NCBI GenBank assembly: GCA_904063045.1
Contig: CAJFCJ010000004.1
Coordinates: 1 to 64,000 of the forward strand
Direction: 5' to 3'
From: Dimorphilus gyrociliatus
Taxonomy: Eukaryota; Animalia; Annelida
Length of the DNA stretch: 64,000 nucleotides
Part shown: piece after piece, positions 3,753 through 59,191 of the stretch
How the letters are laid out: each line of letters opens with the position of its first letter
Position numbering within the stretch: the stretch's first letter is position 1
Translations under genes and position numbers: made by a program
The notes under the pieces: generated by a model
What the model was told of the DNA's origin: nothing
The model's input: the letters and a program-made list of their open reading frames with translations, nothing else
The model's database searches: none

Positions 3753-3844
3753 GGGGACAGCCGGGATTCGAACCCGGGACCTCTCGCATGCTTAGTATAT
3801 TACAACTTCCCAAAGCGAGAATCATACCCCTAGACCACTGTCCC
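3753..3844 (-). tRNA. tRNA-Pro-TGG: tRNA-Pro(TGG), 20-nt intron
   Basis: GGGACAGTGGTCTAGGGGTATGATTCTCGCTT-TGG-G[AAGTTGTAATATACTAAGCA]TGCGAGAGGTCCCGGGTTCGAATCCCGGCTGTCCCC. Full cloverleaf, A and B boxes, T5 terminator. Confidence 0.95.
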
Positions 3845-4129
3845 TTCTCTGTTCAATTTTGGTTTTTTTTAAAAATCATCAATTAAACACATAACTTCAA
3901 ATAAAAATCTTGTAATTTTTCGCTCACTGTAGGCCTAAGTATAAAGAATAAATATTACTGTATATTTTAAAATAAAGCTCTCTCTAAAATGAAAAAATAT
4001 CTTAGTTTTTATGAAGTATGCAAATATTTAATTAATTAAAGTTAATTAGGTCAATAATTTTCTTTAAACAATTGGTAATTTAATTATTATGCCAAGATGT
4101 CCTTGCGTATGGAATTGTCTTTTGTATAT

Positions 4130-4218
4130 GGGACAGTGGTCTAGGGGTATGATTCTCGTTTAGGGTGTTCAATACGCTAATTTACGAGAGGTCCCGGGTT
4201 CGAATCCCGGCTGTCCCC
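4130..4218 (+). tRNA. tRNA-Pro-AGG: tRNA-Pro(AGG), 17-nt intron
   Basis: Same exons with a T31-A39 pair; intron TGTTCAATACGCTAATT; downstream T-run. Confidence 0.95.
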
Positions 4219-4576
4219 GTTGTTGTATTTTTTTTTCTACTAATAATGCAGTATATGATCCATTAGAATGTACTTTTCCTATTGGAAAGTAATTCTATTC
4301 CAGAGTCAGATTTTCGGGGAAAACGCTATCTAATATAGATTAATCTTGAAGAATAAAAGCAAACAGCTTAGCAAAGAGAATAGCTTTAATCTTAAATACT
4401 AAAATAGCTGCTATCAATGAACAAGCAATTATAATTTCTACTTTAAACTAATCTAGGTCATTTCAATTTGATTAATTTTATTAAAATGTCTTTTGTTGGC
4501 TTTCTGAGAAATAATAAATTTACTGGCCATTATATGTCACGTAGACGTAGTCAAGTTTTATTGATTCTTTCATGTT

Positions 4577-4664
4577 GGGACAGTGGTCTAGGGGTATGAT
4601 TCTCGTTTAGGGAATTCATTCGCTAATCTACGAGAGGTCCCGGGTTCGAATCCCGGCTGTCCCC
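4577..4664 (+). tRNA. tRNA-Pro-AGG: tRNA-Pro(AGG), 16-nt intron
   Basis: Intron AATTCATTCGCTAATC; downstream T-run. Confidence 0.95.
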
Positions 4665-5625
4665 GTTGGTTAATTTTTTTAATTGTCTATCTTTTCTTTC
4701 GTCCTAAATCCTCAATCCGCTCAACTTGAACAATAGTAAATCATTCAAGTTCGATAGAAATTAAGATTACGTAGCGACTTTTAAGATATACAAATCATAT
4801 TTTGTAATAATTAATAAGTAGGTCAATAATTCTTGAACATTACAAGAATTGACTGTAAAATATTCAAAATAGATAATCTTATCGCCCACATAATAAACAA
4901 TAAAAGCGAGTCGCCATTTTTCAATTTGCTTGAATAATAAAACAATAATCCTCTTTACTTAGAGAATTTAATAGTTTTTATCAAAATGTACCAATTTTAT
5001 GATATCATCTTTAGTATTGGAACAATTATCATATTGATAGTAAATCGTAGAATGATAAGAAAGAAAACACATCTCCTATTTTTCGCCAATGCGTACCGTT
5101 TTAATTTACATTATATAAAATTATTTCATAACTAGTCTGTTTATTGTTATTATAGTTTGTAAATAATCAACAAGTTATCTAAGATATTATCGATTGTGCA
5201 GAGTATTTTTTAAAGAATTCATTCAAAAATTAGTTCACTCTATATACAACTAGAATGAATATATAAGCGTGTTCAAGCAAGATATAGTAGTGAATAATAA
5301 ATGCTTAAACAAAAATAGAATGATTGATAGTGGAATTATTGCGTTTAATATTCGTATTGAACGCCAAAAAATAAACGATATTTAATAACAATATCACAAA
5401 GCTTGATGAACGAATTTGCATATTGATTTATTCATAAGAGAAATTAAAATTTTCATTGGTTAATTTAACTAGATGACTGTTATTTTTTTTAGAAAAGCAT
5501 GATCATATTTAAAAAATAATGGTTAATTGCTTACGATGGTTATTTCGCAATTTAACCAGGCATGAGATAAGTTTCAGTGCGATTCTTAGTTTTCGTTTTT
5601 AATTTTGAAAATACACTTGTAATTA

Positions 5626-7025
5626 ATGCCAGAAAAGTTCGTTATCATTTGTTCTAAATTAACAGCATATGTCATTTTTATACTAATGACATTTAGTATA
5701 ATCTTGGAATGCAATATAATTTATAATGGATTTGCAAATGAAAATTATATAAATAATGATACAGGATTGTTCAAAATGAGAGAATTTCAACATGAGAGTA
5801 AGTATTGAAAGTATTAAATTTCTAAACAGAATATTAAAAACAAATTATTCCATGTATAGGAAACTCACGAATTATTATTGGATCAGTATCAATAACTTTA
5901 AAAATCTGTATAGTCCTCTTATCATGTTCTCCTTACGGAATAAAGAAACGAATTATATTTATTTTGTTTGCCATCTTTGAAGTCCTTCATTGGTTAGTGA
6001 TTGTAATTACTTACAATTCAATCTTCAATTTCAAAGATGACAAAGATATTATTATTACTCATCGTAACAAAATTTACAAATTGTCTGGATCTAGACTCAT
6101 CGATTTAGCAAGTATCGCACTGATAATGATGGTTAACTATATTGATAAGAAATTTAATACTTATACCTTCCAAAATTGTCATTCGGAGAAGTTATTTTCA
6201 AGTTTTAGCTACTCTCATGATGGATTAACGAGTAAATTGAAATTCTGTGAAATACAAACTATTGAAGATAGTTTAAGAGAAGATGTCTTTTATACCAGAT
6301 ATTCGAACAAAAAAGCTCTTTTGAGCATATTATCATCTCATTATAACATTGCTTTTAGGTGGAAATCTTTAAAACGGCTTTCTAAAGATAGAAAATTTAT
6401 AATTACAATAAATTTGAAGTTTATAGAAAATTTATATGCGAATAGAAGTCAGTTAAATCATATTTTCATTAGAGATATTGCTGAATTAAATAGTCTTTAT
6501 AATATCCACTGTTTGAGCTTGTTCAACGATAATATCGACAAAGAGAAAACATGTTTACTTGATATTTTAAGAGAAAACAAAAATTTTAATGGCCTTTTCT
6601 TGGATACTTATGAATTTTTAATAGAAAGTTTAATAGTCAGTGAGGATGGTTTGTCGTTAGTTAGAAAATTTGTCAACAGACTTGAAGACCGGAAACAGAA
6701 AGATATGGCTTTAGACTTAATAGTCAAGCGAATTTTCAGGAGTTGGCCTCCACCTCTGCTTTATCTTTCTTTGTTGAAACTTCGTAAAACAGTGAAGAGT
6801 GGACATTTAAGACTTTTGGAAAGTATGCCTCTACAAACTGCAAAATTTGTTATGAATCCTATAGAGAATACGCAATTCAAAGATATTGGTGCTGTTTTAA
6901 GACTAAAGAACGATAATTTATGGAGAACTAAACCTACCGGTATTTATGAAGAGATTAAACGTTTTCAGTGCAATTTTCAAACAGAAGTAGAAAACTGTGA
7001 GAAGATACAATTACTTAAGGTTTAA
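5626..7025 (+). CDS. A3 paralog, ~445 aa; exons 5626-5797, 5860-7025
   Basis: Donor GTAAGT 5798; acceptor TATAG 5859; frame hand-checked open into ORF 5964. Motifs LNSLYNIHCL, ESLIVSEDG, WPPPLLYLSLLKLR. Cys/His motif is lost. Confidence 0.88.
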
Positions 7026-8477
7026 TTAGAATGTACAAAAAATATCATATACTTGTATACTAGAATTAGACAAAGACATCATTAAACAATGTAATATTTA
7101 GTTGTTATTCGTTTTATAGATTTTAATTGGAAAACAATGTATAAGCGTTTTAAAATATGCTAGTCTTATAAATGATTCATTCAAGTATATTTTCCATTAC
7201 TGACTAGATACTGTATTAATAGTTTTACAATAGTTCCTTTTGAAATATATGATAACAAAATATAAACAAACCTTATTGTAGAGTTCAATATTGTTATTAT
7301 TCCTAATGAAATTAGGGGAAAATAAATGTAAAAACCAAAGATTATGAAGACTAAATAGACAAAAACAAAAGAAAAAACAAAAAAGAAAATACTGTGTATT
7401 CGTAGCTGTGTTTTCTAATAATTCATCTTCTAATTAATTCAAAAATTAATTGATTAACGAAAAATGTAACAATCTAGTACAATAAAACGTGTTTGTATTA
7501 AATGTAAAATTAATTTTCAATTCATAAATCTATTTTTACAAGTTTTATCCATTTTAATCAATAATCCAGGTATTATATATAATATTTTGAAAGTTTAGCT
7601 ATGTAAATCAAAACATCTCTATTTGACTTCAAGTGACTATTAATAGTATTAATAAATCTTTTTATAAGCGTATTCAATTCATTGATAAAACTATCCTATC
7701 TAAGTTTTTATACTACGTTTTACCTTTTACTATATTTAAATTTATTTAAAACAGTAGTATACTTGATAAATCATGAAAAATATAGAGTATAAACAATTGA
7801 TATACATCTAATATAATACTTAAAAGGTAAACGACCTTTTGGACGATGAAATACTGAAAAATCTATGAGTGAGTTTTTGACTATGAAAACCAGTTTAACT
7901 AGGTTAAATATTCGATTAAATTCTTACTGGAATCGATAAGAATACTAGTATTAGAAGATTTAATAAAGTCTTATAAACTAATAGGATTATAAACCAAACA
8001 TCAGTTAGTTGATAGAGTAAGAAAATTCCAGTAAAGAAGATATAGAGGGTATATTTTTTTCCTTAGGACTTTTTTACATACCACCATATACTGTAAATAT
8101 ATACAAGTAGATTTTCCAGTTTGTCTTCATTCTTAATCTCTCTCCTAACAAGGAAAGAAAATAAATTACACTTAATGAGACTAATGGCATTCATTTCTTT
8201 ATTAATTCTATAACAGAGTTATTACCTCTCATGTAAAAAAAATATGTCAACGTTTTAGCTTGTTATTGTTTAACAAACTGGAAAAGTATTTCCTCTTATC
8301 TGTATAACGATTATAAAGGATAGATACTTTCTCCCGAGAACCACTCTTTTCCCAAAAGACCTTGACCTTTAAAATTGCAAACTGATTTGTTGAGTTTCTT
8401 CTCTTTATTTATAAATGAAAAAAAATAAGCTAATTCATTGGCTTTGCTTATTAAATTTACTGGTGAAAATATAGACT

Positions 8478-9988
8478 ATGGAATACGCTAGGGAACTAGT
8501 CAGCTTCCTTAAAGAAAGGAGAAGCATAACGTTTGTTGTTACTACAATGGTTATAATAGTAACAGCGTTGATGCCTATTCCTGAATTATTTTGCCTATCA
8601 AGAGGATTTATAATTGTGAAACTACCGCACAGTTCCAGTTACGGTGCTCTATTGAATTTACCTCAAAACGGTATGAAGATTTAAATGTTTTAAATAATCG
8701 TTACTATCCTAATTGATAATAAAATTTCTTTCTTCTTTTTATAGCCTTGAAGACAACTATAATGACTCTAATAACATTTATTCCTGTATTTATTCTACTA
8801 ATAGCAGTTAGAGTTGGATTTGGTGACTATAAATATGTAACCATATCCGGAAGTATTCTAGCCATATTAGGCATTGCTGTCACTGTTTCCTATACAACAT
8901 TGGGTGTTCTAACGTATACGGATTGTTTAAATACTGTAGACGTTTTAAATTCTGCTTACAACGGCACAATCGAATGGAGCTGGGATGCTAAATATTATCT
9001 GTTTATTGCGAATTGCCTCCTGCAATATGCTTCGATTTTAATGCTATTTTCTTTAGGATTATTCTTCCTACATTGTCTGCTATCTGTGGAATGGAGGCAC
9101 AAACATGGACTCAACGGAGAACCTTATCGATATGCTGGTATTATAGAAATATGTCGGCTGTCATACAATGAAAATTCAAAATCAGTTCGTGTAGTTCTAA
9201 GTGAAAATATTGAAGCCTATCTGGAGAGTAAATGTCCACCAGTTATCTACAACTCTTGTGAACAAGATAACGAAACTGAAGACTATCTTAGGAACACACA
9301 TCGACAGCGTTGTCGATATCATTTTCCATTCTATCCTCTTCTGCTTCCCTGTTGCCGTAATCGTAATTGTTCATGGTCTGAGTTAAGAATAAGGATAAAA
9401 ACATTTGGATGGGAAACGAGAGAAACTTTCAAAAATATGATTCTACAGTTTGGATTATTAAATAAAGTGGATATTCATTTCTTTACAACATTCCATTTTA
9501 AACCATCTCAATGTTTTCTTGATTATATTAACTTTTCAAGGTCTTTCTTGTGCTATTACGAGCCAATTACTGAGGTATTGATGCTAAGAGAAGATGGATT
9601 TTCTTTTATCAGATGTTTGCGAATGTATGCGAATGATAGTCCTGAGAGGCATGCCTTACATATGTTTATAAACAAAACACTATTGTCGAATTCTCCACCA
9701 CCTTTGTGGTTTTTCTGCCTTCAAAAGGTGAGATTAATGATCCGTAATAGATATAGTAATTTCCTATGGAATGTATCAGAAAATGCGTTAATGTATAAAG
9801 ATTTCGTATTAAATCCTGCTGAGAATACTCATATTCAAGATATATATAAAGTATTAAACTTATCTTATAAGGATTATTGGCTATCTCAACAATCTAAATT
9901 TGGGCTATTAGAAGACTTAAATGAACTTGAATCCGAAAAACAAACACTTTTCGTTCAGTTACCCTTAAATTCTAGCTCTAGTTGTTAA
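8478..9988 (+). CDS. A4 paralog, ~478 aa; exons 8478-8670, 8745-9988
   Basis: Donor GTATGA 8671; polypyrimidine + TAG 8744. Motifs YTDCL, EWSWD, HRQRCRYH, CSW, LREDG, SPPPLWFFCLQKVR. Confidence 0.9.
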
Positions 9989-10518
9989 TACTTAAACAAA
10001 AAAGAAACAAAAAACTTCTGCTCAACTTATCTTGAACTCTTTTTTCATATTTTATTGAAAAAGAAGGAAAGTCTAACCATTGCATTTATTTTTCTATTAA
10101 ACAGTATCCTTTATTGTTTGTATTTACGTTTGTTTGGCAGGAAAATATCATTGATTTATAGTATTATTATTAATAATCTAACTAATTTTTAGATAGATAA
10201 AGTGAGAAAGAATGTTTATATTTTACAATTAATATTAATAAATTTGTATTATGTATAGTTTATTTATTATACATATATTTCATATATTAGTTATCTATCG
10301 TTCATCAGATTTTCGGCGTATCCTTTTGTCAAAGTAATTATTTATTAAATAAATTAGAGGGAATAGTGTATTGACAACGGCTACATCCGTTAATAGTCTT
10401 AATGTTCTATAAAATAAAGAAAGTAATTAGATTTTATTGTCTATTCTAAATTAAAATTAGAAATTATCTTCCATTGAAGGAAAAAGTAAAGTTCTTTTTA
10501 AATCTTTATGCGACGACG

Positions 10519-11109
10519 ATGGACATATCTAAATATAATATTAGAGGAGATCTAAAGGATCAGAAATGTTTGATTCGATTAATTATTGTTATTACTGTTC
10601 TAATAACAAGTATAATGCCATTTTTAGAAATGTTCTTTATAGATAAAAGTTATATTTTAGTTCGATTAGCATCGAATAATACACTAAAAGTTCAACATTT
10701 AAAATTGCCAAATAATGGTAAGGAACTTCATATTTCGGTTGTTTTCTTTAAATTTACTTCTTTTTTCTTTCTTTTACAAGATGATAAAACGTCATTGATG
10801 ATGATTGTTACTTACATGCCTGTATTTGGTATAGTTATGGGATTGAAAGTCTTATTTAAAGATAAAGGTTATATTTGTATTTCTTCCGCTATTCTTGTAC
10901 TTTTAGCATTGACTACACCGATAGCATATGTTAGTTTAGGAATATTAAACTATAGAGATTGCTTTCGAACATTGAAGATTCTCGAGAATGAGATTCTAGG
11001 TTGGGATTGGGGTGCTCGACACATGCTTTTTATATTTAATTGTATTGTTCAAATAGGTGTGGCCTATCTTCAAAGTATTATTTTCGTTCCGATGTGTTTA
11101 AGCCTATAA
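10519..11109 (+). CDS. A5: 4TM-only paralog lacking the cytoplasmic domain, ~175 aa; exons 10519-10717, 10781-11109
   Basis: Closest to A4 (LPNNG/LPQNG, YRDCF/YTDCL, GWDWG/EWSWD). 63-nt intron GTAAGG..AAG. Stop follows TM4; AATAAA at 11180. Confidence 0.7.
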   Translation: MDISKYNIRGDLKDQKCLIRLIIVITVLITSIMPFLEMFFIDKSYILVRLASNNTLKVQHLKLPNNGKELHISVVFFKFTSFFFLLQDDKTSLMMIVTYMPVFGIVMGLKVLFKDKGYICISSAILVLLALTTPIAYVSLGILNYRDCFRTLKILENEILGWDWGARHMLFIFNCIVQIGVAYLQSIIFVPMCLSL

Positions 11110-11331
11110 ATCACATTATAAAATGTAGGCTAAAGAAATATATAATGCATGCTTCTTAGATAATACGAAAACGATACTGAATAAACTTGTTACATATGCA
11201 TTCAGTTTCTCTGTCTCTGTGTCTCTCTCTCTCTTTCTTTATCTTTTTTCTTGACCATTCTAAAGTCACTTATTGATAAGATTGATTTATTGTTTTCCTT
11301 TTCAATATTATTTCAACATTAGGAATGAAAT

Positions 11332-12745
11332 TTATTTGTAATCAACTAGACAGTTAAGATTTTCAAATATTCCGATTCGATGATTCTTTATTATGCAAAT
11401 GCTTCTTTCTGATAGATTAAGTAATGAGAAAATATCTAAAGGAGAGTCTGAACGAAGAGGGTCACAGATAATTGATAAATAATAGTCGCTACAAGGTTCT
11501 CCTAAGGATTTTGGAAATCCTTGTCTTATCATTTGCCTATTTTTAATTAAGCAATAAAACCAAAGAGGAGGAGGCCATTGTTTGAAAAGTCGGCTAGTTA
11601 CCACTTCAACTAGGTTTATGTCATAACAATTTTCATTTAATAGATTGATAAGTGAAAGTCCATCTTCTCTAAGAATTAAGCTTCCTGCAATTTCAACCTT
11701 GATCTTTTCATAATCCACTGTGGATCTTCCAATTGATTTTCGTATAACATGATGCAAATTCAAGTAATTTGAAGGAAAGTGAAAGATTGTAAAAATATGA
11801 ATATTGAATTTGCATAAAATGATCATATTGAATAATATTCTTCTGGAGAAATCGAGTTTTAAAGCATTTACTCTAATTCTTAACTTTTTCCAATTACAAT
11901 CCATCTTTTTATTCTTTGGTATTAAAATTGGATAATATGGATAATGGTACCTGCACTCCTTAGCATGCATCTTAGGAATATGAAGTAACGTTTCGCTATC
12001 TTCATAATTAGTATTGAATATATAATTACCATTTTCTTTAAAAGAAAAATGCAAAAGATCGCATATATCTATAGTTGTTGTTGTGATTGTCTTTCGGTCA
12101 ATAGAGTAATTTAGGATTATGATACTATCGGCTATCGTGCTAGGTCTGCGAAGATTAGAAATGGGAATTCCTTCCATTTCATAAGTTCTATTAGTTTCTT
12201 TAAACAAATGATAGTTTATCTTAAAATAGACAATACCCATCAAAAATAGGAAAAACGATTCTACTAAGAGAATATAATAACTGCAATTCCAGTTCCATTC
12301 AAATTGTTCTAAATTAATATAACGTTTTAAAGTCAGAGAACGTCTATGACAGATAAATACACAATTTAAACAATGAAGTATGCCAGCTAGCATAAAACTA
12401 ATTAGATTAGTTAATTTATATGAAAATAGTGAAAAAATGCATATTAATATAATTCCAATTGAGAAGCTTATATTATAATAAAGTAAAATCCTCTTATCAC
12501 CTGATAAAAACAAGAAAGAATATTATTAATTGTTTCATTTATAGTAATACAATCTTTATGAAAATTAATTTACGGTTTGAATGAGATATTTCCTTTTCAA
12601 TAGACGTTTCGCTATTATTCTTATAATTTATGATTAAAACATTAGTAAATATTGATGTAAATGATAGAATAAGGAATATCGCCCAACCAATGTTTATACT
12701 TGCTATTAAGGTTATATAAAGATTCTTGTTATTTACTTTCATCAT
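11332..12745 (-). CDS. A6 paralog, ~446 aa; exons 12745-12574, 12500-11332
   Basis: Donor GTAAAT 12573; acceptor TCAG 12501. Motifs HAKECRYH, CNW, SLILREDG, WPPPLWFYCLIKNR. Confidence 0.88.
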
Positions 12746-13781
12746 CTAAAAAAGAAATCAATAGAAATTAAATATAAAGAAAAGGAAGGATGGTTAACTT
12801 GGTAGTTGTTATATATCTTACCTTAAAGAGTAACTCTAGTCTCCAATACTTTATCACAAGTTTTATACTGTAAATTGTTAAATTACGTTTTATTCTTACA
12901 CTTTGACCTTCTACTTAGTTTGTATAAATCTTATGTAATTCGATATTTTAACTGATTCCTAACGGAGAAAAATAAATAATTAACCGTTCTATATCTTTAA
13001 ATTTTCCCTTTTATCTTTTATTTAAAAGCTATATTCTACAAAGATTAACTTAATAACCAATAAATATTTACGTAAATAAACATGTAGATTAATATTCATG
13101 TAACACTTAATTTTTTCAACCTGTCTATTTGTACATTTTATAAAAGCAAAGGTTGTTTTGTGGGTGTATGTGTTTCTTTTTGTTATTGTTATTTTTAGAA
13201 TTAGATGCGAAGCAATGAAGATGATAATAGAGATTATTCAGTTAAAGAGTATTCATAGTGTGTTTTTATTCTGTTATTTTATTTTAAGTTTCACTTTACT
13301 CTCCCTCTCTCTCTCTCTCTCTCTCAATTTCAATGTAGTCCAATAAACACTTTCTATTAATAAAAACAGCGCCATATTTATAAAAAAAATAACTTTTTTT
13401 GATCATTAAAAAAATAGTAGAATGGAATTTTTTGTCCATTCTGGGTTTACAATACAAAAACAAAAAAAGAAAGAAATAACTAGGTAACCAGTTTATTATT
13501 AAATTGCTGCTGTAAAAAATAGAATTTATTCTTTCTTTGCCAGATGTTACTAATTTTTTTTTTATGGTATTGCTTTATCAATTCTTATTGATAAGTTAAA
13601 AAGAGTGAAAGAGTGGAATGAAACGTTTGACAGCTTTTTGAATATTTATTATTATATTGAAGTAATTGCTTTTTTTCCTCCTCCTTCTCCTTCTCTTTCC
13701 CTTCTTCTTCATCTCACTCTCTTTCTATTCTTATGAAGAATGGTAATATCGATTAAAATATAGACTAATTAGATAACGAAA

Positions 13782-13879
13782 GGGACAGTGGTCTAGGGGT
13801 ATGATTCTCGTTTCGGGTTTAGTCATATAAGCAAATTCGAAATTACGAGAGGTCCCGGGTTCGAATCCCGGCTGTCCCC
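13782..13879 (+). tRNA. tRNA-Pro-CGG: tRNA-Pro(CGG), 26-nt intron
   Basis: Anticodon CGG with T31-A39; intron TTTAGTCATATAAGCAAATTCGAAAT; downstream T-run. Confidence 0.95.
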
Positions 13880-18544: not shown

Positions 18545-18647
18545 GGGACAGTGGTCTAGGGGTATGATTCTCGCTTTGGGATTTAATTTGAACAGTTAAA
18601 ATCTGCAAAATTGCGAGAGGTCCCGGGTTCGAATCCCGGCTGTCCCC
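18545..18647 (+). tRNA. tRNA-Pro-TGG: tRNA-Pro(TGG), 31-nt intron
   Basis: Intron ATTTAATTTGAACAGTTAAAATCTGCAAAAT; T5 terminator. Confidence 0.95.
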
Positions 18648-20229: not shown

Positions 20230-20669
20230 TTTTTTACTGTGACTATCGAATAATTGTATATGATAATTATCTCTAATGAACAATAGAGAATTATGAATTT
20301 TCCTGTGCGGCTTGCTATTTCATTATTGAAAGAGAACGAATGGGAGAAGGAGACACGCTTTTAAAAGAAACTGGTAACTTTTCAATGAATGAATAATGCT
20401 GGAAAATTACAAATGTTTCTTTCGAAATTCCCTAATCAAATTAGAGATAATACCAGGAATGTTGAAAATTAGCTTTGTTTATCAATCAGAACTGTCAGGT
20501 AAAAAGAACAAATTGGTGATGGCGTTAACCAAAGATATGAACTAAAAGATTATTGTTACTGTCGCTTTAGTAGTATTGTAAATTAAATAATTAACTCACA
20601 GACTCTCTTATCAGATTATATACTCTTCTTTATATTGTTTTCTAGAGAAGAAATATCAAAAATATTATT

Positions 20670-20764
20670 GGGGACAGCCGGGATTCGAACCCGGGACCTC
20701 TCGCATTTCTATACAGTTTATTCAACATCCCAAAGCGAGAATCATACCCCTAGACCACTGTCCC
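20670..20764 (-). tRNA. tRNA-Pro-TGG: tRNA-Pro(TGG), 23-nt intron (tandem copy 1)
   Basis: Intron ATGTTGAATAAACTGTATAGAAA. Confidence 0.95.
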
Positions 20765-20846
20765 TTTATGATTTATTCATAATTTATCATAATTTTTTCT
20801 ATAATTTCAAATATGAATCGTTCAAGAAAATAAAACAAAAACTATT

Positions 20847-20941
20847 GGGGACAGCCGGGATTCGAACCCGGGACCTCTCGCATTTCTATGCAGTTTATTC
20901 AATATCCCAAAGCGAGAATCATACCCCTAGACCACTGTCCC
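20847..20941 (-). tRNA. tRNA-Pro-TGG: tRNA-Pro(TGG), 23-nt intron (tandem copy 2)
   Basis: Intron ATATTGAATAAACTGCATAGAAA. Confidence 0.95.
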
Positions 20942-21023
20942 TTTATGATTTATTCATAATTTATTATAATTTTTTTCTATAACTATACCATTAATGTTTG
21001 AAAAATGTAAAATAAAAAACAGT

Positions 21024-21118
21024 GGGGACAGCCGGGATTCGAACCCGGGACCTCTCGCATTTCTATACAGTATATTCAATATCCCAAAGCGAGAATCATA
21101 CCCCTAGACCACTGTCCC
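21024..21118 (-). tRNA. tRNA-Pro-TGG: tRNA-Pro(TGG), 23-nt intron (tandem copy 3)
   Basis: Intron ATATTGAATATACTGTATAGAAA. Confidence 0.95.
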
Positions 21119-21200
21119 TTCATGATTTATTCATAATTTATCATAATTTTTTCCATAATAGCAAATATGAATCGTTCAAGAAAATAAAGCAAAAACTATT

Positions 21201-21291
21201 GGGGACAGCCGGGATTCGAACCCGGGACCTCTCGCATTTTTTACATTATAAACATCCCAAAGCGAGAATCATACCCCTAGACCACTGTCCC
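21201..21291 (-). tRNA. tRNA-Pro-TGG: tRNA-Pro(TGG), 19-nt intron (tandem copy 4)
   Basis: Intron ATGTTTATAATGTAAAAAA. Confidence 0.95.
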
Positions 21292-22284
21292 ATCTTGAAG
21301 TGAGACTAAGAAATGTTGCAATTTCGTTTATCTGTTCATTAAAAATTCACCTTTCTCTAGGCAAAAATCAATATATACCGTATTGTTAATGAATCTAAAT
21401 CTAATAATTTATATTGAAAATCTATCTAATATTTTTCCTCTTTATTGTATGCTTTGAACAGTTTTTGTCCGAATTATGAGACATTTATAGATTCATTATA
21501 TTTTACATTTTAAAGAATGTTTTTATATAAGAAATTATTAAAGTAACCTTAGTAACATTGTAAATGTTTAACAATTTTTGTCTTAATGATCTTATGTATA
21601 GTAAATAAAAGTAATTTCGTTAATTTCTTTTCATCTTTTCTATTTTAGTGTTTTCAGTTTCATTTTTCGTTTATTAAACTAAAATAATCCCTATATTTCA
21701 AAGAATCATTTATCTTCTTAGCTTTTTTAATCTTGTATTCAATGAAAAGAGCAAGAAAAGAAAAAAAGACAAAGATCTTAATATAGTTTTTGCCTATTTC
21801 TCATCTCTTTCAAAATGGATGATGATGAAGCTGTTTCCTTTTTACTTTTCAATAGCCTACAGCTTTAACAATAGTCACGAATTACAATGTATTATATAGT
21901 CTGATTTAAGACAAATTCAATTAGCATTATTACAAAAACTGATTAATTTTCAAGAAGATCAATCATGACACCTAAAATTAAGAATTTATAGTTGTATACC
22001 TATTATTCTATTAATCTTATGTTTAATTTATTTACAAAGTGTGTATTACATAAAATTTAACAATTTATTAGTTAAAAAACACATGGTTTATGCACAAAAT
22101 TTTCTAACAATAAATGTTAAAGCAATAGGTTATAATAAATATTTTACAAAAAGCTTTAAATGCTTTATTATAATTAATTTTTTTTATAAAAAAAAAATTT
22201 CCATTTATTATAAATAAATTAATTTAAAGTAAAAAGAAATATGATTTGTAAAAAACATCTTTTTATAGAAATATTCTTCAGACA

Positions 22285-22376
22285 GGGACAGTGGTCTAGG
22301 GGTATGATTCTCGCTTTGGGAAGTTGTAATATACTAAGCATGCGAGAGGTCCCGGGTTCGAATCCCGGCTGTCCCC
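22285..22376 (+). tRNA. tRNA-Pro-TGG: tRNA-Pro(TGG), 20-nt intron
   Basis: Identical, intron included, to the copies at 3753 and 33223. Confidence 0.95.
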
Positions 22377-22602
22377 AATAATTTTTTTTCTTTTTTTTTT
22401 CAACAATTTACATTTATTAGAAATTACCTGGGGAATAATCAGCGAAATTTTTCTATAATAATATAATACTCTTTGTTAAATGCGTTCTTTTATATATATT
22501 TTCAAAGCTTTATACTGGTTTTAGGTTTTATGTTTATGCTTTTTTATATAAAATCAATTTTTCAATATTTATTATTGCGCAAAAAAAAAATATTTAGCCA
22601 AC

Positions 22603-22690
22603 GGGGACAGCCGGGATTCGAACCCGGGACCTCTCGTAGATTAGCGAATGAATTCCCTAAACGAGAATCATACCCCTAGACCACTGTCCC
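22603..22690 (-). tRNA. tRNA-Pro-AGG: tRNA-Pro(AGG), 16-nt intron
   Basis: Identical, intron included, to the copy at 4577. Confidence 0.95.
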
Positions 22691-23070: not shown

Positions 23071-23172
23071 GGGGACAGCCGGGATTCGAACCCGGGACCT
23101 CTCGCAATTTTGCAGTTTTTAACTGTTTAATTCAATCCCAAAGCGAGAATCATACCCCTAGACCACTGTCCC
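23071..23172 (-). tRNA. tRNA-Pro-TGG: tRNA-Pro(TGG), 30-nt intron
   Basis: Intron ATTGAATTAAACAGTTAAAAACTGCAAAAT, related to the intron at 18545. Confidence 0.95.
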
Positions 23173-23773: not shown

Positions 23774-25257
23774 TTATTCAATATTTTCAAAAATCCCGTA
23801 ATGCAACGCTGACATTTCCCATATCCTGGAATAAGAAAGCCGAAGGGGTGATGATTGCAATAGTGACTTTTCGTGATAGTTTTTTAGAAGGGTTTCTAAT
23901 ACAGTGTTGTTTAAATCTAAAATTTGAATTTCTCCATTAAATGCTTTAATATATTCTCTTGTCTTTGTCCAACACAAATAGCTTAGGGGAGGAGGCCAAT
24001 CGCTAAATATTTTTTTCGTAACTAGTTGCAATATTTCGTGCTTATGTTCAGCTTGTAATTCTTGTGCAAGTTCATTAGCTAAGAGTAATCCATTCTCATG
24101 AATAATCAAACTTTCCACAAAAAATCGACAATATTTAGAAAATATATCATCAAAATTATCCCTTTCTTTGAGACAATCAATTATTGATTTATTGTTTTTA
24201 TAGCCCTTTAATTTTAAAGGAACTAATAAATGTATACCCAATTTATTTAACATTGCCAACTGACGTAATATCCAATCGTTATCATTTTCCACTTTTGTAG
24301 ATGTAAGATTCTGCAATAGCTTTTTTGACAAATTAACCTTAATTTTTGCACTGTTTGAATGTAATCCTTTAAACGAAGATAGTTTTAAATGTTTCGCCTG
24401 TTGATTATTTTCTTTTAATAAGAGATTTAGATTTCTCTTGTTAAGATTTATCTTAATTGAAGCAAAATGATCAATTTTCTTTCTTTTTGACTTATATATT
24501 TGATATAGTATTGGTCTTCTTTCGAAGTTGTTGTTTACACTAGAAAAATCAGCTTCGAAACCAAAAACTTTTAGATATAATAGAGGTTGTTCACAATTAT
24601 CTTGGTCAACAGTATCAATTAGCGACTCTTCATCATTAGGTCTTCTTTCAAAACAAGTCGTAAAGGCAAACTGATGCATATTGTTGGTACTTAATAAAAA
24701 TCTATATGTAGGAAGAAATACCATAAATACGACATCAAACAAAAAGAGAAATATAGCAACGTAGAATCCAAAACCCCAGAACCATACGATTCTGTAAGAT
24801 TTATTATAATATCTTAATCTATTAATGCAATCAATATAAATTTCGACAGCAAATACCCAAACGAAAAATGTTATTAACATAGTTAAAATTGATAATGCGA
24901 TATAAACAATATTTCTTTTAAAAAAGAATAATAAACTCGGATAAAGTATTGTAATTAAGGTCAAATTTCCAAAATGAAAGGCTAAATCGTCGAATGCTAG
25001 TTAAAAAAAAAAGAAAATAAACAATCAGAAATTTTTCAATACTATTCCGTTGAAAATATATATTTTGTATAAATGTCTAAAATACCTCTTTCTTCTGGAA
25101 TAGAAATATTTCTGCTCATACTACCATTCTGTGTATATATCGTCAGGTTTATCCATTCCGTAAAAACTATTGCAATTGAGAATGTAAAATAGATAAGAAG
25201 AGAGCAGATAACTGCATATTTTATTTGCACTATCCGACTGGAGATTGTTCGCAGCAT
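23774..25257 (-). CDS. A10 paralog, ~464 aa; exons 25257-25086, 24996-23774
   Basis: Donor GTATTT 25085; acceptor CTAG 24997. Motifs YIDCI, VWFWGFG, LNKLGIHLL, ESLIIHENG, WPPPLSYLCW. Cys/His motif is lost. Confidence 0.87.
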
Positions 25258-25435
25258 TTTATGTTTTCAGCTCAAATATTATAGATTCGCTTTAAATGGT
25301 TGAATTAGAGTGGTTCTAATATTTGTATATGTCACGTGAGCATGTTATTATTTTTTATAGAAATCTATTGCTTCTAGTATTAAAACAGTATTTGTGAATT
25401 TTTTAGTAGCAGGATCAAAATTTTATTATATTCTA

Positions 25436-26881
25436 CTAATCTTGAATATTTAAAACTTGAAATAATCCATAGTTTTCTAGAATCCATAAATCTTTAAATG
25501 TAAGATTTAACAAACAAAATATATCAAATATAACAGTTTCACTAGGACGAGAAATAAACAATAAAATATCTTCTGTGCAGTATCTTAGATTGATAACTTT
25601 CAAGTTATTTTTTATCATATATCTCAATTTCATAAGGGAATGGAACCATAGTGGAGGAGGCCAGCTAGAGAATGTTATTTTTGTTAGTTGATTTTGAACC
25701 ATGACCCTTAGATATGAACTTTGTAACTTTTCCAACAACAGGTTAATAAGAGTAAATCCATCCTCTCTTATAATGAGACTTTCTATAACGTATACATATA
25801 TTTTGATAAATATATTTTCAAATCTATGGAATTTTTGCAAACAATTTATGAGACAATCATTCTGGTTTGTCTCCATATATGAGAATGGGGTAAGAAAATG
25901 AATGTTCATCTTATGAAGAAGAGCTAAATCATCTATGTGAATTGTATTTTCAAAATCTATTGAAGAAAATTTCCATGGATCCAATCTAATTCTTAGCATT
26001 CTCCAAGAACAAGGCTTCCTTTTCGCTGTTGTTGACTTGGAGGTTGTTTTGTGAATGTTACAATACTTTCTGTGATTGGAGAGAGCGTGATTATACGTAT
26101 TCGAGTCATTCTCTGTTGTATTAAATACAATTTCATTGAATTCCGTTAGATTTAATAATACATTATCTCTATCGAGATAATTAACCATCAAAAATGTCGA
26201 CCAAGCATATTCAATTAAATCGATAAAATATCCTTTTCTGGCCCTAAGTTCATTTTCTATTCGAAAACTATCTAATTGTCTACTTCTCAATTGAAACTTA
26301 ATTAATCCTTTCCATGTAAAAACAATATAACCACCAGATTGATACTTTTCCAGAATAAATCGCCAGAAGCATATACAAATCAATAAGAATGAATGGCAGA
26401 ATGCCCAAAGAATAAATATATAGTAATCAACTGGCCAGGTTCTTTTGCATTTATAAACTTGCTGATATTCTTTCAATTCTTTGTTTACTCTTTCGAATAA
26501 TAGAGAACCGAAAAGAATTTGCAGTAGTAAAATTACAGGCACAAATACAAAAATAAACTTGAAACAATTAAACTTTTTCATAAAACTCAGCAGTAATAAG
26601 GGATATAATACAATATATGTAAAGTTTGCACTATGAAAGAAATCTTGCAGTTTATCTAAAAAAGAATAAAGAACATAGTTTAGACTTTTTTTTAGATAGT
26701 ATAATAAGAAAGAAGACTTACCTTTGTTCACATATATTGTAATGTTAACAGTCCTATTTTTATAACTGACCACAGATAGTTCACTATAATAAAGTTTAAC
26801 CGTAAATGTTATGTAGCTAAAATACGAAAGTATAAATGTATAACCAAAGGTTTTAACAAGAATAGAAGTAGTTTTTGACAT
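25436..26881 (-). CDS. A11 paralog, ~459 aa; exons 26881-26722, 26655-25436 (66-nt in-frame stop-free intron)
   Basis: Donor GTAAGT 26721; acceptor TTTTTAG 26656. Motifs HRKYCNIH, PCSW, ESLIIREDG, WPPPLWFHSLMKLR. Confidence 0.88.
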   Translation of the reverse strand: MSKTTSILVKTFGYTFILSYFSYITFTVKLYYSELSVVSYKNRTVNITIYVNKGKSSFLLYYLKKSLNYVLYSFLDKLQDFFHSANFTYIVLYPLLLLSFMKKFNCFKFIFVFVPVILLLQILFGSLLFERVNKELKEYQQVYKCKRTWPVDYYIFILWAFCHSFLLICICFWRFILEKYQSGGYIVFTWKGLIKFQLRSRQLDSFRIENELRARKGYFIDLIEYAWSTFLMVNYLDRDNVLLNLTEFNEIVFNTTENDSNTYNHALSNHRKYCNIHKTTSKSTTAKRKPCSWRMLRIRLDPWKFSSIDFENTIHIDDLALLHKMNIHFLTPFSYMETNQNDCLINCLQKFHRFENIFIKIYVYVIESLIIREDGFTLINLLLEKLQSSYLRVMVQNQLTKITFSSWPPPLWFHSLMKLRYMIKNNLKVINLRYCTEDILLFISRPSETVIFDIFCLLNLTFKDLWILENYGLFQVLNIQD

Positions 26882-27671
26882 TTTTCAGTTGTAAATAAAG
26901 GGTAGCAGTTTTAGAGTAACCAGTTTATCTTAGAATTTAGAAGCTACAACCAGACCCTTAGAGTGGTTCACCTTGCTCCTTCCAATTATTTAATATCAAC
27001 CTATTTCCTGAGGTATTAATTGATTATTACTATTATAGTATTAGTTAATTGACCGTATAAAAAAATTACAAGTCCATTATGATTCGGTGAAAAACAATAT
27101 ACAAGCTACTTTTAAAAGTTTTATTTCAACATACCAACAAAATGAAAGTTATATTCTAATTTCTTCTTAGGGCAACAATTATATTAAGTGAAATTTAGCA
27201 TCCAATCTTGGAAATCAATTAATATCCTTCAGTTTTTCCCACTATAGAAATATTGTTACCTAATGTTCTTTTGAGAGATTTGTAATATAAAAATGCAAAA
27301 GTCCCTAGGTTCTTTCGGGAAATAATACATTTCAATATTAGAAAATAAAATCCCTAGAGTCTTTAGAATACTATATCAATTGTGATTATTAACAAAAGGA
27401 CAAGATATAAATATAATAGTATATACTGTATATATAGCTATTAAGATGTACACGGTAAATTAAATATTTGATAGTTGAAAGAAGAAGCAAAATCGTCAAA
27501 ACAGAATAGGAAGCTTTAATAAGATAAAGTTTATCATATAAGTGCCACTTAGTCAAGAGGAAAATTTATTATAAATAATATACTAGAGTGTCTTTAATGA
27601 ATGTGAAAGGAAGAGAGGAGCATGTGAGAGGGAAAAAAAGAAAGAATGGGATAGAAAGAGTAAGAAATAAA

Positions 27672-27674
<3 letters not shown>

Positions 27675-27721
<47 letters not shown>

Positions 27722-27722
27722 C
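27675..27722. repeat. (GA)n microsatellite
   Basis: About 18 perfect GA units followed by a GGA-degenerate end. Confidence 0.95.
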
Positions 27723-28236
27723 ATAAGATTGATTAGGTTCTTTAAATAGAATACTTGTTGAATTAAATAAAAACAATCTTTAGTAATTAAATACTGACAT
27801 AAATGATAGAATTTGGTTTATGAAATTTCATCAAATTCCATATATTATAGCTCGACTTCCTTATTTAAGCTATTTTTAGATTTAATTAGACGTTTTTTTT
27901 CTCATCTTAATATACCTAATTTCTTTTTCCACCTACTCCATCTATCTTTATCCGTTTTGAATAATGCAGTAGACGACTATACATTGTTCTCCTATAAAGC
28001 TTTTCTTGCCTTTTTGTAAATAGAACTCTTACAACCAGCGTGTAAGCTAAAACCACAATTACTGTGGTTAAGACTTTCTCCTAGAGGTTAAGTATCACGC
28101 TTGCTACTTCTGTTATAAAAATTTATATTTATATATATATAGTACTTGTCCTATTTTACTTTAAGAAAAAAACATATCATTAATTAGACCTAAGTAGCAT
28201 AAATTAAAAGAAAAAAAAATAAAAAACTTAAACAAC

Positions 28237-28324
28237 GGGGACAGCCGGGATTCGAACCCGGGACCTCTCGTAGATTAGTGAGTCGGTTCCCTAAACGAGA
28301 ATCATACCCCTAGACCACTGTCCC
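28237..28324 (-). tRNA. tRNA-Pro-AGG: tRNA-Pro(AGG), 16-nt intron
   Basis: Intron AACCGACTCACTAATC; downstream T-rich run. Confidence 0.95.
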
Positions 28325-29030
28325 AATCTGCTAGAACTACTCTTATAATCACAATATTTTCCGCAACTTTCCAAAAATAGCATGGATTTTACATATTTCA
28401 CCGATTTTTTTTTACTTATTATTGATTGCAAATAGTAATAATAATAAATGAACGGTCTTAAAATACGAACTGTTAATAGGCCAAAAGAATAAAAAGAAAG
28501 AAAATAAGAAACACAAATAAACTAATGAAGATAATAAATTTGCAAACTCTCTCTTTTAACAATGACAAACTACAGAGCATTGCTGCACAATCCATTAATG
28601 AAGATAATTTAACTTCATAATTCTTTTATAAGAGAATACAAAAAAGAAGAGAGCTTTTACTAGTAAATAATATAGAAGGCACTACAATTATATAATAGCC
28701 AACCTTTTGAACCTTTAAAAAACAAGAGAATACATTAAAAGCTAAATAAATATTTTGACGATAAGATGTAAATTAAGGGAATATAAAAATATTTCAATAT
28801 TAAAATACATAAGGAAAATATTCCTAATTAAAAATAAAACTAAAAATTCTAATTAAATGTAATCTGATTATTTATCTTGTTATGAAGCAGTTTCAAACTG
28901 AGAAAATCGATATAAACAACGTAAAGCTATTTTAAAGAGGAAGAGAGGCTAAATTAAAAAATGAATAAACAATAGAAATAATTTAAGAACTTGGAACGAA
29001 AATATTTATTCAATTTAATAAATTTTTATA

Positions 29031-30491
29031 TTAAATATGTATACATTCAAATATTCCACATAAGAATTGTTCATTAGTCCATAAAGATTCAAAAGATAAT
29101 TTCAAAACAGTAAATATATCCCAGTTAAAACGATTTTTCAACGGATTGCAAATAGATGATTCAATTATTGTATCTTTTAATTTAGTTTTGAACATTCTAT
29201 TCAAAATTCTCTGTCTATAATACTTTTTTATAAGGGAACGGACTTTCATTAAAGCCTGATACCATAGTGGTGGTGGCCATATTAGAAAAGTATCTAAAAG
29301 AACATGGCATTTTATTATTAATTTATGATCTGGACTTTTTAATTTTGTAATAAGCTTATTTATAAGATAAATCCCATCTTCTCTAATTGCTAAACTTTCA
29401 ATTAAATATATATAAATTTTAGGAAAAATGCTATCAAAATGATCTAACTCTTGTAAATTATCTAAAAGACATTCTGATTGAGGATTATTAATAAAATTTG
29501 AAAAATTAAAGGGCGTTAATACATGAAAATTCATTGTATTAAGTACATTTAATAATTTAAGATTATTATGATTTTTAAAATAGTTACAATTGTATAAAGT
29601 AGTATCAATTCTTATTCTTAATCTTTTCCACGAACATGGAATCGGTATATGTTTACTCTTTGCTTGAAAACTATGATAAATACTTTGCCTTTTATGACAA
29701 ACTGAAGCTGTATAGTAAGATACAGAATCAAACATTGTATTATTATACATAATATCGTTTGATTGCGCAATTTTATACGTTAAAAGTCTCTTTAAATCAA
29801 CCTCGTAGATGGACAAACGTTTCTCTAAGAAATTCCATTTATATTCTAGCAGTTGAAGAAATTTTGTGGATCTCGTAAAAGATGCTTCAATCTCTGTATC
29901 TATACTTTTGATTTCTTCGTAATACGATTTTAACATAATAACTCTATATGTAAAAACAAAAATAATTATAAAAATATTATAAATCATCAATACTAAAAAC
30001 ATATAAAATCCGGGTAGTAAGTTCCAATCAATGGGTCCATTTTGTGTGTAAATATCCAATTGCGTTTTACATTGTCTATATAATTTAAAAGCAAACCGAT
30101 AATGAACAACGGCTATTAGACATATTCCAAAGAAGCCCAAAAGTAAATGGGAACATCTTTTAATCGACGTTAGGAATAGATAGGAAAATGATGATGATAT
30201 AAAAACTAAATTTATCACCAGAATTCCATAAAGTGAACTATCTATTAAATAGATATTTGTTAATGCAATAAATTTTATGAATAAATGTATTTAAATGTCT
30301 TTATATATAAATATAAATAACTTACCTTTAGAATCGGGTAATTGAATTATGATAGTTTTATTTAAAGTATCGTTAAAATATTTAATTACTATCATTTCGC
30401 TGACGTAAACAGTTACTGAAAGAACGCAATAAGATCCAAAAATTGGGAAGAAAGCTATTCCGAATAGTTTTTTCGTTATTAAAGAATTCAT
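29031..30491 (-). CDS. A12 paralog, ~458 aa; exons 30491-30326, 30241-29031
   Basis: Donor GTAAGT 30325; acceptor AATAG 30242. Motifs PCSW, ESLAIREDG, WPPPLWYQALMKVR. Confidence 0.88.
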
Positions 30492-30929
30492 TGCTCTATT
30501 TTAACAATGTTTAAGACAGAAGAGGAGGACTATGTCTGATAGAACGTCAGGAATCTGCGAGACTAATATTTAAAAAATGTACAATTCTCTATTATCGCTC
30601 TTTACTTTTGCAAAGTTTTTTATTTTATACTTGATAATTTTAAATAAACAATTTTATTTCTTAATAAAGTAAAAATTATAACAATTATGTATATGAATTA
30701 TTCATAAAAATTAAAAAAATTGAAAATATTTTAACAACTAACAACTATTCCTATTATAATTTTTCATTAATTATTAATGAAAAATTTCACGGTTTTTTGC
30801 AATCTGGAATTCCATTAGGTGTAACAAAAGCTTATATTCTATTGTATCTTCATAACTAAAAAATCTCATTATTTCTCTTTTTCATATTTATCCAAATTGA
30901 AGTGAGTTTGTCACGTTTTCCAGTTTTTT

Positions 30930-32436
30930 TTAACAATGTAGGATTTCAAAAATGCCATATTTGAAATTTTTATCTTTCCAAATACATTCGTAAGAGAGAT
31001 TTACAACTGAAAACAAATCTAAATTATTCGATTGAGGCTTAAGCACATTAGATATTGAATCTTTTATATCCTTGTACGTCCATTTTTCAGTTTCTTTTGA
31101 GCATGTTCTGATCTCGTAACGTACTTTCTGTAGACAGTAGAACCATAATGGTGGAGGCCATCGCTTAAAAATTTTATTTATAACGCAATTTTTAACTAAT
31201 TCTCTATGTTTAGGATTTAGGAGCTTTCCTATTAACTCATTAATCAGAGAAAATCCATTCTCTCTTATTAGTAAACTTTCAATTATAAACTCCATCATTT
31301 TCGGAAATTTCTCATCAAAATTCTCATGTTTTTGTAAATAATCAATTAACGAGTCATTTCGTACATTCTTTATATTAGAAAAAGGTGTAATAAAGTTGAA
31401 ATTCAGTTTATTAAGAAATAATAAATCTTTTAAATGTCTAACATTAGTAAAATCAATTGTCATCAACTTGGAAATATTTATTCTTAGGCCTAATCTTTGC
31501 CACTGACAATAATCTTGAAGCGTATTTGATAATACTGGACAGCTATGTAAGGCGCATCTGCTTTCGTGATATGAATATATATAATTTGAAAATTTCTTCG
31601 AATAGAAACTGTTTTCTATTTCGTATGTAATACAGTTATCCTTACGAAATTTCGACTTTTTCAATAAGGTATTAAATATCTCTTGTTCTAAATAATTAAA
31701 CGTCAATCCGCCGTTACATGAGTATTTTATATACTTCACTAAAGGATTTCCAGTTTTTAATAAAATTTCGTTCTCTACTGAGCATCCGTCTCTCTCTTCT
31801 TGATTTTCCAACCAATTCCCACAGGGCAAAACACCCTGATATTTGATTGAGCTTGTTATAAAATGTAATAATAAAATTATATTCATAACAAGTAGATAAG
31901 ATATGAATAATACTATAGTGATGTAATATCCATAGTCCCATTGCCAAACAACAGTATTATAAACTTTTAACAATTCAATAGTATTTTTTAAATTTCTATG
32001 AATAAGAAAGACGACAAACCATTGAACGAGTAAAGTTATTGGATAACCAATTGCATAGTGAACAAAGAATCGGATTTTATGTCGAAAATTATATATAATA
32101 CTTGGATAGAATAGAAGTATAAAAGTAAAATTACTAATATGGAAAATCAGTTCTTTGTCAGCTGTAAAATAAATAATAAAAAAACTATAAATTAAGAATA
32201 TACTGCTGTATATATTATTTTATTTATATATATTCAGTTAAATTGAATAAAACAAAATTATGCATACTTCTCTCTGCTGGTAAATAGATATCCTTCCTAT
32301 TCAAACCAACATTGCTGTGTAATGTAACAACTATCCATTTACTATACCATAATTTTATCGATAGACTGAGATAAATAACCAAAAACAATACAGATGAAAC
32401 ATGTACTATAAACTTTCTTATAAATTTCTTTTTCAT
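30930..32436 (-). CDS. A13 paralog, ~466 aa; exons 32436-32268, 32161-30930
   Basis: Donor GTATGC 32267; acceptor TACAG 32162; frame hand-checked open into ORF 31973. Motifs WQWDYG, HESRCALH, CQW, WPPPLWFYCLQKVR. Confidence 0.88.
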
Positions 32437-32510
32437 TAATTCGATCAATTAAATTATTATCTCTTCATTAAAAGGATTAAAAACATTTAGTATTCCTGTC
32501 TTCCTCTTTC

Positions 32511-32516
32511 TTTCTA

Positions 32517-32548
<32 letters not shown>

Positions 32549-32583
32549 CCTCTCTCCCTCTCTCTCTCTATTTCTCTCTGTGT
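32511..32583. repeat. Compound (TC)n/(TCTG)n microsatellite upstream of A13
   Basis: Read directly from the sequence. Confidence 0.9.
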
Positions 32584-33222
32584 CTGCCTTTGTATTCTCT
32601 TAAGCGCTCTTGAACGTTTAGTAAATACAGTCAATCTGACATTATATTATATCCTATAGCTTTCGTAATCATTACTAATGTTTTTTTATACGATTTAGTC
32701 ACGAAAAATAGAATAGAAGCTATTTTTTGGAAAATCCATTACAGGTACACTTAAGAGAAATTTTTTTTATTAACTTAATCAGTTTTATAAATATTGTCCT
32801 ATTGGCCTAAATTAATAAGGTTAAAAAAAAAAAGAGAGAAATAAAAACAATTTAGATGAATTCTAAATAAGAATGATATAGAATTTTATAGTAGAACTGC
32901 ATAATATAAAACATATATGACTTTTATAATAAATATTATTTGTCATTATTAAAAATATATCAATAAACAACGTTAAATGCTTTATAAATACATTTATTCG
33001 TTATATTTATGATATTTATGAATAATTACAAATTCTTATGTCCAAAAACAAAACTCAACTATTGTATCTTCCTATTAAGTAAAAATAGATTTGTACTTGA
33101 ATAAAACATTGTTATCTTATTAATTAATCTTTTCTCAGATTGTATCGTATCTTGATAATAATAAAAAAAACTTTTGGAAAATAGCAAAACAAAGCAAAAA
33201 AAAAAAAAGAAAAAAAATTATT

Positions 33223-33314
33223 GGGGACAGCCGGGATTCGAACCCGGGACCTCTCGCATGCTTAGTATATTACAACTTCCCAAAGCGAGAATCATACCCC
33301 TAGACCACTGTCCC
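33223..33314 (-). tRNA. tRNA-Pro-TGG: tRNA-Pro(TGG), 20-nt intron
   Basis: Identical to the copies at 3753 and 22285. Confidence 0.95.

Positions 33315-59152: not shown

Positions 59153-59156
<4 letters not shown>

Positions 59157-59184: not shown

Positions 59185-59191
<7 letters not shown>

Follow-up and report, generated by a model that had tools for sequence, protein, structure and literature searches.

Can an animal decode proline with tRNA genes that are nearly all interrupted, and by what route would their introns be removed and have been acquired? This question is raised by the first 64 kb of contig CAJFCJ010000004.1 (C4; contigs are labelled C1, C2 and so on) of the annelid Dimorphilus gyrociliatus, hereafter the window, which belongs to an assembly of 77.9 Mb in 349 contigs (GCA_904063045.1). 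The window holds 14 tRNA-Pro genes, nine TGG, four AGG and one CGG, and each carries an intron, whereas in animals about 7% of tRNA genes on average are interrupted, most of them in the Tyr, Ile(UAU), Leu(CAA) and Arg(UCU) families (PMC12168002). A sequence-only reading of this stretch had called such introns atypical for animals, in agreement with that report. We put at roughly 85% the probability that these are functional nuclear genes whose introns are spliced canonically by TSEN, the tRNA splicing endonuclease, and RtcB, and that they are one facet of an unusually broad tRNA-intron repertoire.

Anatomy of the tRNA-Pro genes

Exon/intron boundaries were set by a regular-expression parse of the invariant exons. 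Infernal with the Rfam model RF00005 matched 12 of the 14 genes over their full length (48-50 bits), with an insertion of 19-31 nt in the anticodon loop; ARAGORN added the genes at 4577-4664 and 22603-22690, and recovered all 14 when run in intron mode. This mode is required, the default labelling Pro genes as Lys, Pro-ggg or '???'. Intron mode itself misassigns three genes of a tandem array as Leu-taa or Pro-ggg, with the intron misplaced; the Infernal alignment and the invariant exons identify these as TGG. Unless noted otherwise, exon parse and pairing analysis also support the genes below.

3753..3844, minus strand: tRNA-Pro(TGG), 20-nt intron identical to those of the genes at 22285 and 33223; RF00005 50.1 bits; 4/4 anticodon-intron pairs
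4130..4218, plus strand: tRNA-Pro(AGG), 17-nt intron; RF00005 48.1 bits; 4/4 pairs; minimum-energy fold is stem, 3-nt bulge, helix
4577..4664, plus strand: tRNA-Pro(AGG), 16-nt intron identical to that of the gene at 22603; ARAGORN; 4/4 pairs
13782..13879, plus strand: tRNA-Pro(CGG), 26-nt intron, 31:39 T-A, GTTG trailer; RF00005 47.9 bits; 4/4 pairs, with intron nucleotide -5 a G opposite C34
18545..18647, plus strand: tRNA-Pro(TGG), 31-nt intron; RF00005 49.1 bits; exon parse, pairing and fold
20670..20764, minus strand: tRNA-Pro(TGG), 23-nt intron, tandem-array member; RF00005 49.8 bits
20847..20941, minus strand: tRNA-Pro(TGG), 23-nt intron, tandem-array member; RF00005 49.8 bits
21024..21118, minus strand: tRNA-Pro(TGG), 23-nt intron, tandem-array member; RF00005 49.8 bits
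21201..21291, minus strand: tRNA-Pro(TGG), 19-nt intron, tandem-array member, the sole gene with 3/4 pairs; RF00005 50.2 bits
22285..22376, plus strand: tRNA-Pro(TGG), 20-nt intron; RF00005 50.1 bits
22603..22690, minus strand: tRNA-Pro(AGG), 16-nt intron; ARAGORN
23071..23172, minus strand: tRNA-Pro(TGG), 30-nt intron homologous to that of the gene at 18545 (similarity z = 6.7); RF00005 49.2 bits
28237..28324, minus strand: tRNA-Pro(AGG), 16-nt intron; RF00005 48.2 bits
33223..33314, minus strand: tRNA-Pro(TGG), 20-nt intron; RF00005 50.1 bits

All introns follow nucleotide 37; they measure 16, 16, 16, 17, 19, 20, 20, 20, 23, 23, 23, 26, 30 and 31 nt and comprise 11 distinct sequences. Among the exons only nucleotide 34 and the 31:39 pair vary, the pair reading C-G where the anticodon is TGG and T-A where it is AGG or CGG. 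Each gene is an otherwise complete cloverleaf with a single intron at 37/38 (RF00005 model positions 1-71 are all matched), and its exons abut exactly as they do in an intronless CGG gene on contig C12 (see below). The genes have the features of canonical type-2 RNA polymerase III tRNA genes: the D-arm and T-arm, which contain the A box and the B box, are invariant and fit the tRNA model, the B-box pattern is present in 14/14, and every gene is followed within about 21 nt by five or more consecutive T, a run that occurs inside none of them. None of the 13 distinct Pro introns of the genome (11 of which are in the window) contains TTTT; we do not rely on this avoidance, which gives P = 0.008 against random window DNA but P = 0.21 against composition-matched shuffles. 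The gene count by anticodon, the invariant exons, the number, length and position of the introns and the intact boxes and terminators had all been proposed in the sequence-only reading, and were upheld by Infernal, ARAGORN and the exon/intron parse. Judged by their sequences, the genes are real, intact and almost certainly functional.

Nearly all tRNA-Pro genes of the genome are interrupted

The two exons were searched separately across the whole assembly, allowing up to three mismatches, and a search was also made for an uninterrupted Pro anticodon arm. The exon searches yielded only three Pro genes beyond the window and no degraded copies anywhere in the 77.9 Mb, which extends to the assembly the earlier claim that no copy has decayed.

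Contig C3: tRNA-Pro(AGG), 11-nt intron, exons identical to those of the other AGG genes
Contig C28: tRNA-Pro(TGG), 20-nt intron
C12:1576915-1576986: tRNA-Pro(CGG), intronless, with a T8 terminator, the TGG-type 31:39 C-G pair, one D-loop change and one T-loop change

Rfam at its gathering threshold omits the C3 gene, which ARAGORN detects. The anticodon-arm search found the C12 gene alone. An intron is therefore present in 16 of the 17 Pro genes of the genome: 10/10 TGG, 5/5 AGG and 1/2 CGG. The assertion that every Pro gene is intron-containing holds within the window (14/14) and fails for the genome, where the one intronless gene is CGG and none is TGG or AGG.

The intronless gene, being CGG, serves just the minority CCG codon, and as all TGG and AGG genes are interrupted only CCG decoding has an intron-free source. 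Counting Pro codons in the long open reading frames (ORFs) of the window (CCT 91, CCA 75, CCG 27, CCC 21) shows that about 87% of them are read by species whose genes all carry introns. With RtcB and an endonuclease domain encoded in the genome (see below), this sustains the earlier proposal that Pro decoding leans on splicing.

The anticodon pairs with the intron in the register of a TSEN substrate

Animal and archaeal-type endonucleases require a helix between anticodon and intron that starts with a 32:(-3) pair and so holds the 3′ splice site within a 3-nt bulge; in animals the proximal anticodon-intron pair, TSEN and RtcB are all required (PMC6614914). Our results show that nucleotides 32-35 pair with intron nucleotides -3 to -6 at all four positions in 15 of the 16 intron-bearing Pro genes (13 distinct introns), and that, with a helix so placed, the 3′ splice site falls within a bulge of 3 nt. 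When introns were shuffled, a mean of 1.07 genes had four pairs and none of 2000 shuffles reached 15; when the pairing register was slid from -4 to +7, four pairs were found in no gene or in one. Furthermore, intron nucleotide -5 tracks the wobble base in 16/16 genes, being T opposite A34, G opposite C34 and A opposite T34. For 7 of the 13 distinct introns, the isolated arm has a minimum-energy fold made up of stem, 3-nt bulge and helix. Beyond the six nucleotides tied to helix and bulge, these introns (11-31 nt) have little sequence in common.

The enzymes are encoded as well: RtcB at C16:277013-278308 (PF01139, 480.5 bits), and the tRNA_int_endo domain of the splicing endonuclease (PF01974) at two loci, C6:4061107-4061411 and C5:2961744-2961827. 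The Pro introns thus have the canonical features of TSEN substrates, namely the 37/38 position and an anticodon-intron helix with a 3-nt bulge, in a genome that encodes the enzymes, and their removal would give a mature, aminoacylatable tRNA.

Several points weigh against this interpretation. The helices are rich in A-U and G-U, and the fold does not choose them in 6 of the 13 introns, where they are weak; the gene at 21201-21291 has only three of the four pairs. Since Pro tRNAs carry U32, their proximal pair is U-A or U-G, unlike the C-G of all 16 Drosophila intronic tRNAs (PMC6614914). The Pro copies are paralogues, so that 15/16 is not a count of independent cases; the distinct introns number 13. 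Lastly, the case for the function of these genes is one of sequence conservation.

On the reading that we favour, RNA polymerase III would transcribe the Pro genes from their internal A and B boxes into a precursor with a short intron after nucleotide 37. Pairing of nucleotides 32-35 with intron positions -3 to -6 would extend the anticodon stem into a bulge-helix-bulge-like motif, with the 3′ splice site in the 3-nt bulge, where TSEN would cleave both junctions; RtcB ligase would join the exons and probably also circularise the intron. Only once splicing had taken place would the anticodon loop form and be modified, with inosine-34 in the AGG species and m1G37.

Introns in other tRNA families

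The sequence-only reading had proposed a lineage-specific intron gain in the Pro genes. We examined a sample drawn independently of introns, made up of the first 100 places listed for the B-box pattern (C1 to part of C5), of which those outside the window correspond to 55 stretches; three ARAGORN labels were reassigned by eye. For scale, the genome has about 300 B-box matches above the control count, and an estimate of 320 tRNA genes has been published for this species (PMC12257675). Outside the window, 9 of the 55 tRNA genes carry a canonical intron: Glu(TTC) in 1/5, Ser(GCT) in 1/1, Ser(TGA) in 4/5, and one each of Leu(AAG), Leu(TAG) and Leu(CAA). These are, with positions given within the fetched stretches:

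L016:1315-1403: Glu(TTC)
L023:182-279, 1482-1583, 1863-1967 and 2379-2478: four Ser(TGA)
L021:129-229: Ser(GCT)
L057:909-1014: Leu(AAG)
L058:125-225: Leu(TAG)
L046:195-319: Leu(CAA)

The Glu(TTC), Leu(AAG) and Leu(TAG) introns carry the same 4-bp helix at -3 to -6 (scored by script for Glu and by eye for both Leu). Introns in at least six other isoacceptor families make the Pro introns part of a genome-wide trait rather than a Pro-specific event, and the idea of a gain confined to Pro is accordingly abandoned. When the C3 Pro(AGG) gene and the 14 genes of the window are included, the interrupted share is 24/70, about one third. In the Glu(TTC) and Ser(TGA) families, interrupted and intronless copies adjoin within the same clusters.

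Evolution of the Pro family

Self-BLAST of the window revealed a single DNA-level duplication of at least 300 bp:

20648..21298, minus strand: tandem array repeating about every 177 bp, holding four TGG genes (20648-21125 against 20824-21298, 87.7% identity)

Copying of the Pro genes within large segmental duplications was considered and is ruled out by this result, the array being all that is duplicated. In contrast to their flanks, which are at background identity (0.57-0.65 against 0.57 +/- 0.03), the dispersed genes at 3753, 22285 and 33223 are 100% identical in exons and introns, as are those at 4577 and 22603. Homogenisation hence seems restricted to the transcribed unit; it looks like gene conversion or copying of the unit only, and gene conversion, which is known among tRNA genes, would fit such a pattern (PMC4090602).

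The derived 31:39 T-A pair and a GTTG trailer are present in all AGG genes and in the intron-bearing CGG gene, and absent from TGG genes and from the intronless CGG gene. These marks identify the CGG gene at 13782 as a member of the AGG lineage; read from them, it arose by an anticodon shift, A34 to C, with a compensating change of intron nucleotide -5 from T to G. Four processes would together account for the family: genes were duplicated in tandem locally, the transcribed unit was dispersed, homogenisation acted within the limits of that unit, and the anticodon shifted at least once, from AGG to CGG.

Comparison of AGG and TGG intron cores gave a best z of 2.9, with z > 2 in 4 of 44 cross-class pairs, and no cross-class similarity is significant after correction for 78 comparisons. 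All Pro introns may go back to a single origin, the likeness of AGG and TGG introns being suggestive only, and the earlier view that one gain predates the split of the isoacceptors is not demonstrated by a likeness that falls short of significance.

Relation to known tRNA introns

The annelid Pro introns resemble the TSEN/RtcB introns of animal Tyr-GUA, Ile-UAU, Leu-CAA and Arg-UCU genes in their 37/38 position and short length, in the anticodon-intron helix, with its proximal 32:(-3) pair and the 3′ splice site lying in a 3-nt bulge, and in the RtcB and endonuclease domain encoded by the genome. They differ in isotype, with all three Pro anticodons affected, and in that an intron is found in an A34 species needing inosine. 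With S. cerevisiae tRNA-Pro(UGG) and fungal Pro genes they share the isotype, the 37/38 position and the interruption of every gene of a family, but in fungi ligation is by Trl1 and the introns are linear. The AGG to CGG shift recalls Lachancea thermotolerans, in which an interrupted Leu-UAG gene begot Leu-CAG through a change of nucleotide 34 (Yoshihisa 2014, PMC4090602); here, in contrast, the organism is an animal, the compensating intron base is visible and an intronless gene with the same anticodon coexists. As for introns that give rise to tRNA intronic circular RNAs, the prerequisites, RtcB and a bulge-helix-bulge-like motif, are present and circles are predicted; the Pro introns, with 11-31 nt, fall short of the length of those Drosophila circles that have been characterised.

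When metagenomes were scanned for interrupted Pro genes sharing these core exons, at least 120 loci were obtained (L063-L182), which we used solely as a contrast for the pairing register and which are uninformative on annelids. The acceptor stem differs in every one of them, the median GC is 54%, 107 of the 120 listed are AGG, and they are probably fungal. Among those listed, the -3 to -6 register is found in 9/120; in most, the anticodon pairs instead with an ACCCTA-like box located in the intron's 5′ half. By these sequences, Pro introns are common outside animals, and those of the annelid have animal-type geometry.

Alternative explanations

How the introns came to be there admits several accounts. 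We hold it possible, on balance rather doubtful, that this small annelid underwent a lineage-specific burst of tRNA-intron gain and spread, which interrupted about one third of its tRNA genes, every Pro(UGG) and Pro(AGG) among them, with introns passing between isoacceptors by anticodon shift and co-evolving with the anticodon. A single lineage-specific insertion into an ancestral Pro gene, with the three isoacceptor sets derived by anticodon switching and all Pro introns homologous, is put forward just as tentatively. In its favour, the three classes share one exon body save for nucleotide 34 and 31:39; the intron-bearing CGG gene is demonstrably of AGG lineage by its T-A pair and GTTG trailer, the core of the 4130 intron resembles that of 20670 (z = 2.9, p about 0.003 uncorrected), the C3 AGG intron starts with the same five bases as the 20670 intron, and yeasts offer a precedent for an intron that spread through codon switching (PMC4090602). 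However, the few cross-class pairs with z > 2 do not survive correction, animals usually have the same Pro body in all isoacceptors, so that this identity gives no date for the intron, the presence of introns in at least six further families makes independent TGG and AGG gains plausible, and the intronless CGG gene has a TGG-type stem. The introns of Pro, Ser(GCU), Leu(UAG) and Lys(UUU) might alternatively have been retained from early opisthokonts or animals and lost in model animals, which we regard as improbable. The families with introns here overlap the intron-bearing set of budding yeast, which includes Pro(UGG) and also Ser(GCU), Leu(UAG), Lys(UUU) and Leu(CAA). The D. gyrociliatus genome has, moreover, been described as conservative (PMC7854359). 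Against retention, introns in animals at large are few and mainly in Tyr, Ile(UAU), Leu(CAA) and Arg(UCU) (PMC12168002), and here they also occur outside the yeast set, in Pro AGG and CGG, Glu(UUC) and Leu(AAG); families of mixed composition (Glu(TTC), 1/5 interrupted; Ser(TGA), 4/5; Pro(CGG), 1/2) suggest ongoing turnover, and the environmental, probably fungal, introns mostly use another register.

That the copies are silent or degenerate, as pseudogenes or derivatives of an element, with mature tRNA-Pro made from other genes, is very unlikely indeed. They are clustered amid a fast-evolving ORF family near a contig end, as such copies might be, but exon and anticodon-arm searches reveal no other TGG or AGG gene in the assembly, exons remain 100% invariant while introns and flanks diverge, anticodon-intron pairing is kept by compensating changes and every copy has its terminator. 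Compatible with functional, TSEN/RtcB-spliced genes, and in our view unlikely, is an added role for which the introns would be retained, such as a stable circular RNA, an intron-dependent modification or a regulated supply of Pro tRNA. Animal tRNA introns do yield stable circles (PMC4536317), modifications that depend on the intron are known for Tyr, Leu(CAA) and Ile(UAU) (PMC12168002, PMC10275265), and dispersed copies keep identical introns between flanks at background identity; gene conversion over the transcribed unit explains that identity equally well (PMC4090602), and the 13 different introns share little sequence outside the helix and bulge.

Neighbouring open reading frames

Between 915 and 46244 the window contains about 17 paralogous long ORFs of 347-534 aa (mutual identity 21-40%), whose N-terminal halves are hydrophobic and whose last conserved region, C-terminal and about 200 aa long, includes a W-P-P-P-L-W-F motif; the tRNA-Pro genes occupy spacers between members of this family. 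No match to it was found in Pfam, in the PDB (profile search) or in the protein Atlas, and a single outside homologue (P0001, 59% identical, on a 4.2-kb Logan contig) was recovered among 5.8 billion proteins. Several short hydrophobic ORFs, weakly alike, lie at 54391-62561, and a (GA)n-type repeat near 62000, translating as an E-R run, is located at the 5′ end of the minus-strand ORF 61365-62006.

Significance

Animal tRNA introns are thought to be limited to a few families, and the mode by which eukaryotic tRNA genes gain introns is unknown. Our literature search found no description of this Pro and multi-family intron repertoire, and the main text of the D. gyrociliatus genome paper (PMC7854359) does not mention tRNA. 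For an animal, three things are unusual here: the isotype, the interruption of every single TGG and AGG gene, and the range of families with introns; the splicing pathway itself, TSEN and RtcB, is ordinary. Nearly all Pro decoding in an animal, about 87% of Pro codons by the local ORFs, would be made dependent on TSEN and RtcB, and several other amino acids likewise. The Pro paralogues help to define which intron features are truly constrained, the six nucleotides at the 3′ end, and they are a rare record of an intron that followed an anticodon shift with a compensating base change. Interrupted and intronless copies of the same tRNA provide a tractable comparison set for the role of tRNA introns. 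If a lineage-specific burst did take place, no animal would have been described with a broader intron-dependent tRNA repertoire, and the annelid would be a natural system in which to study how introns enter eukaryotic tRNA genes.

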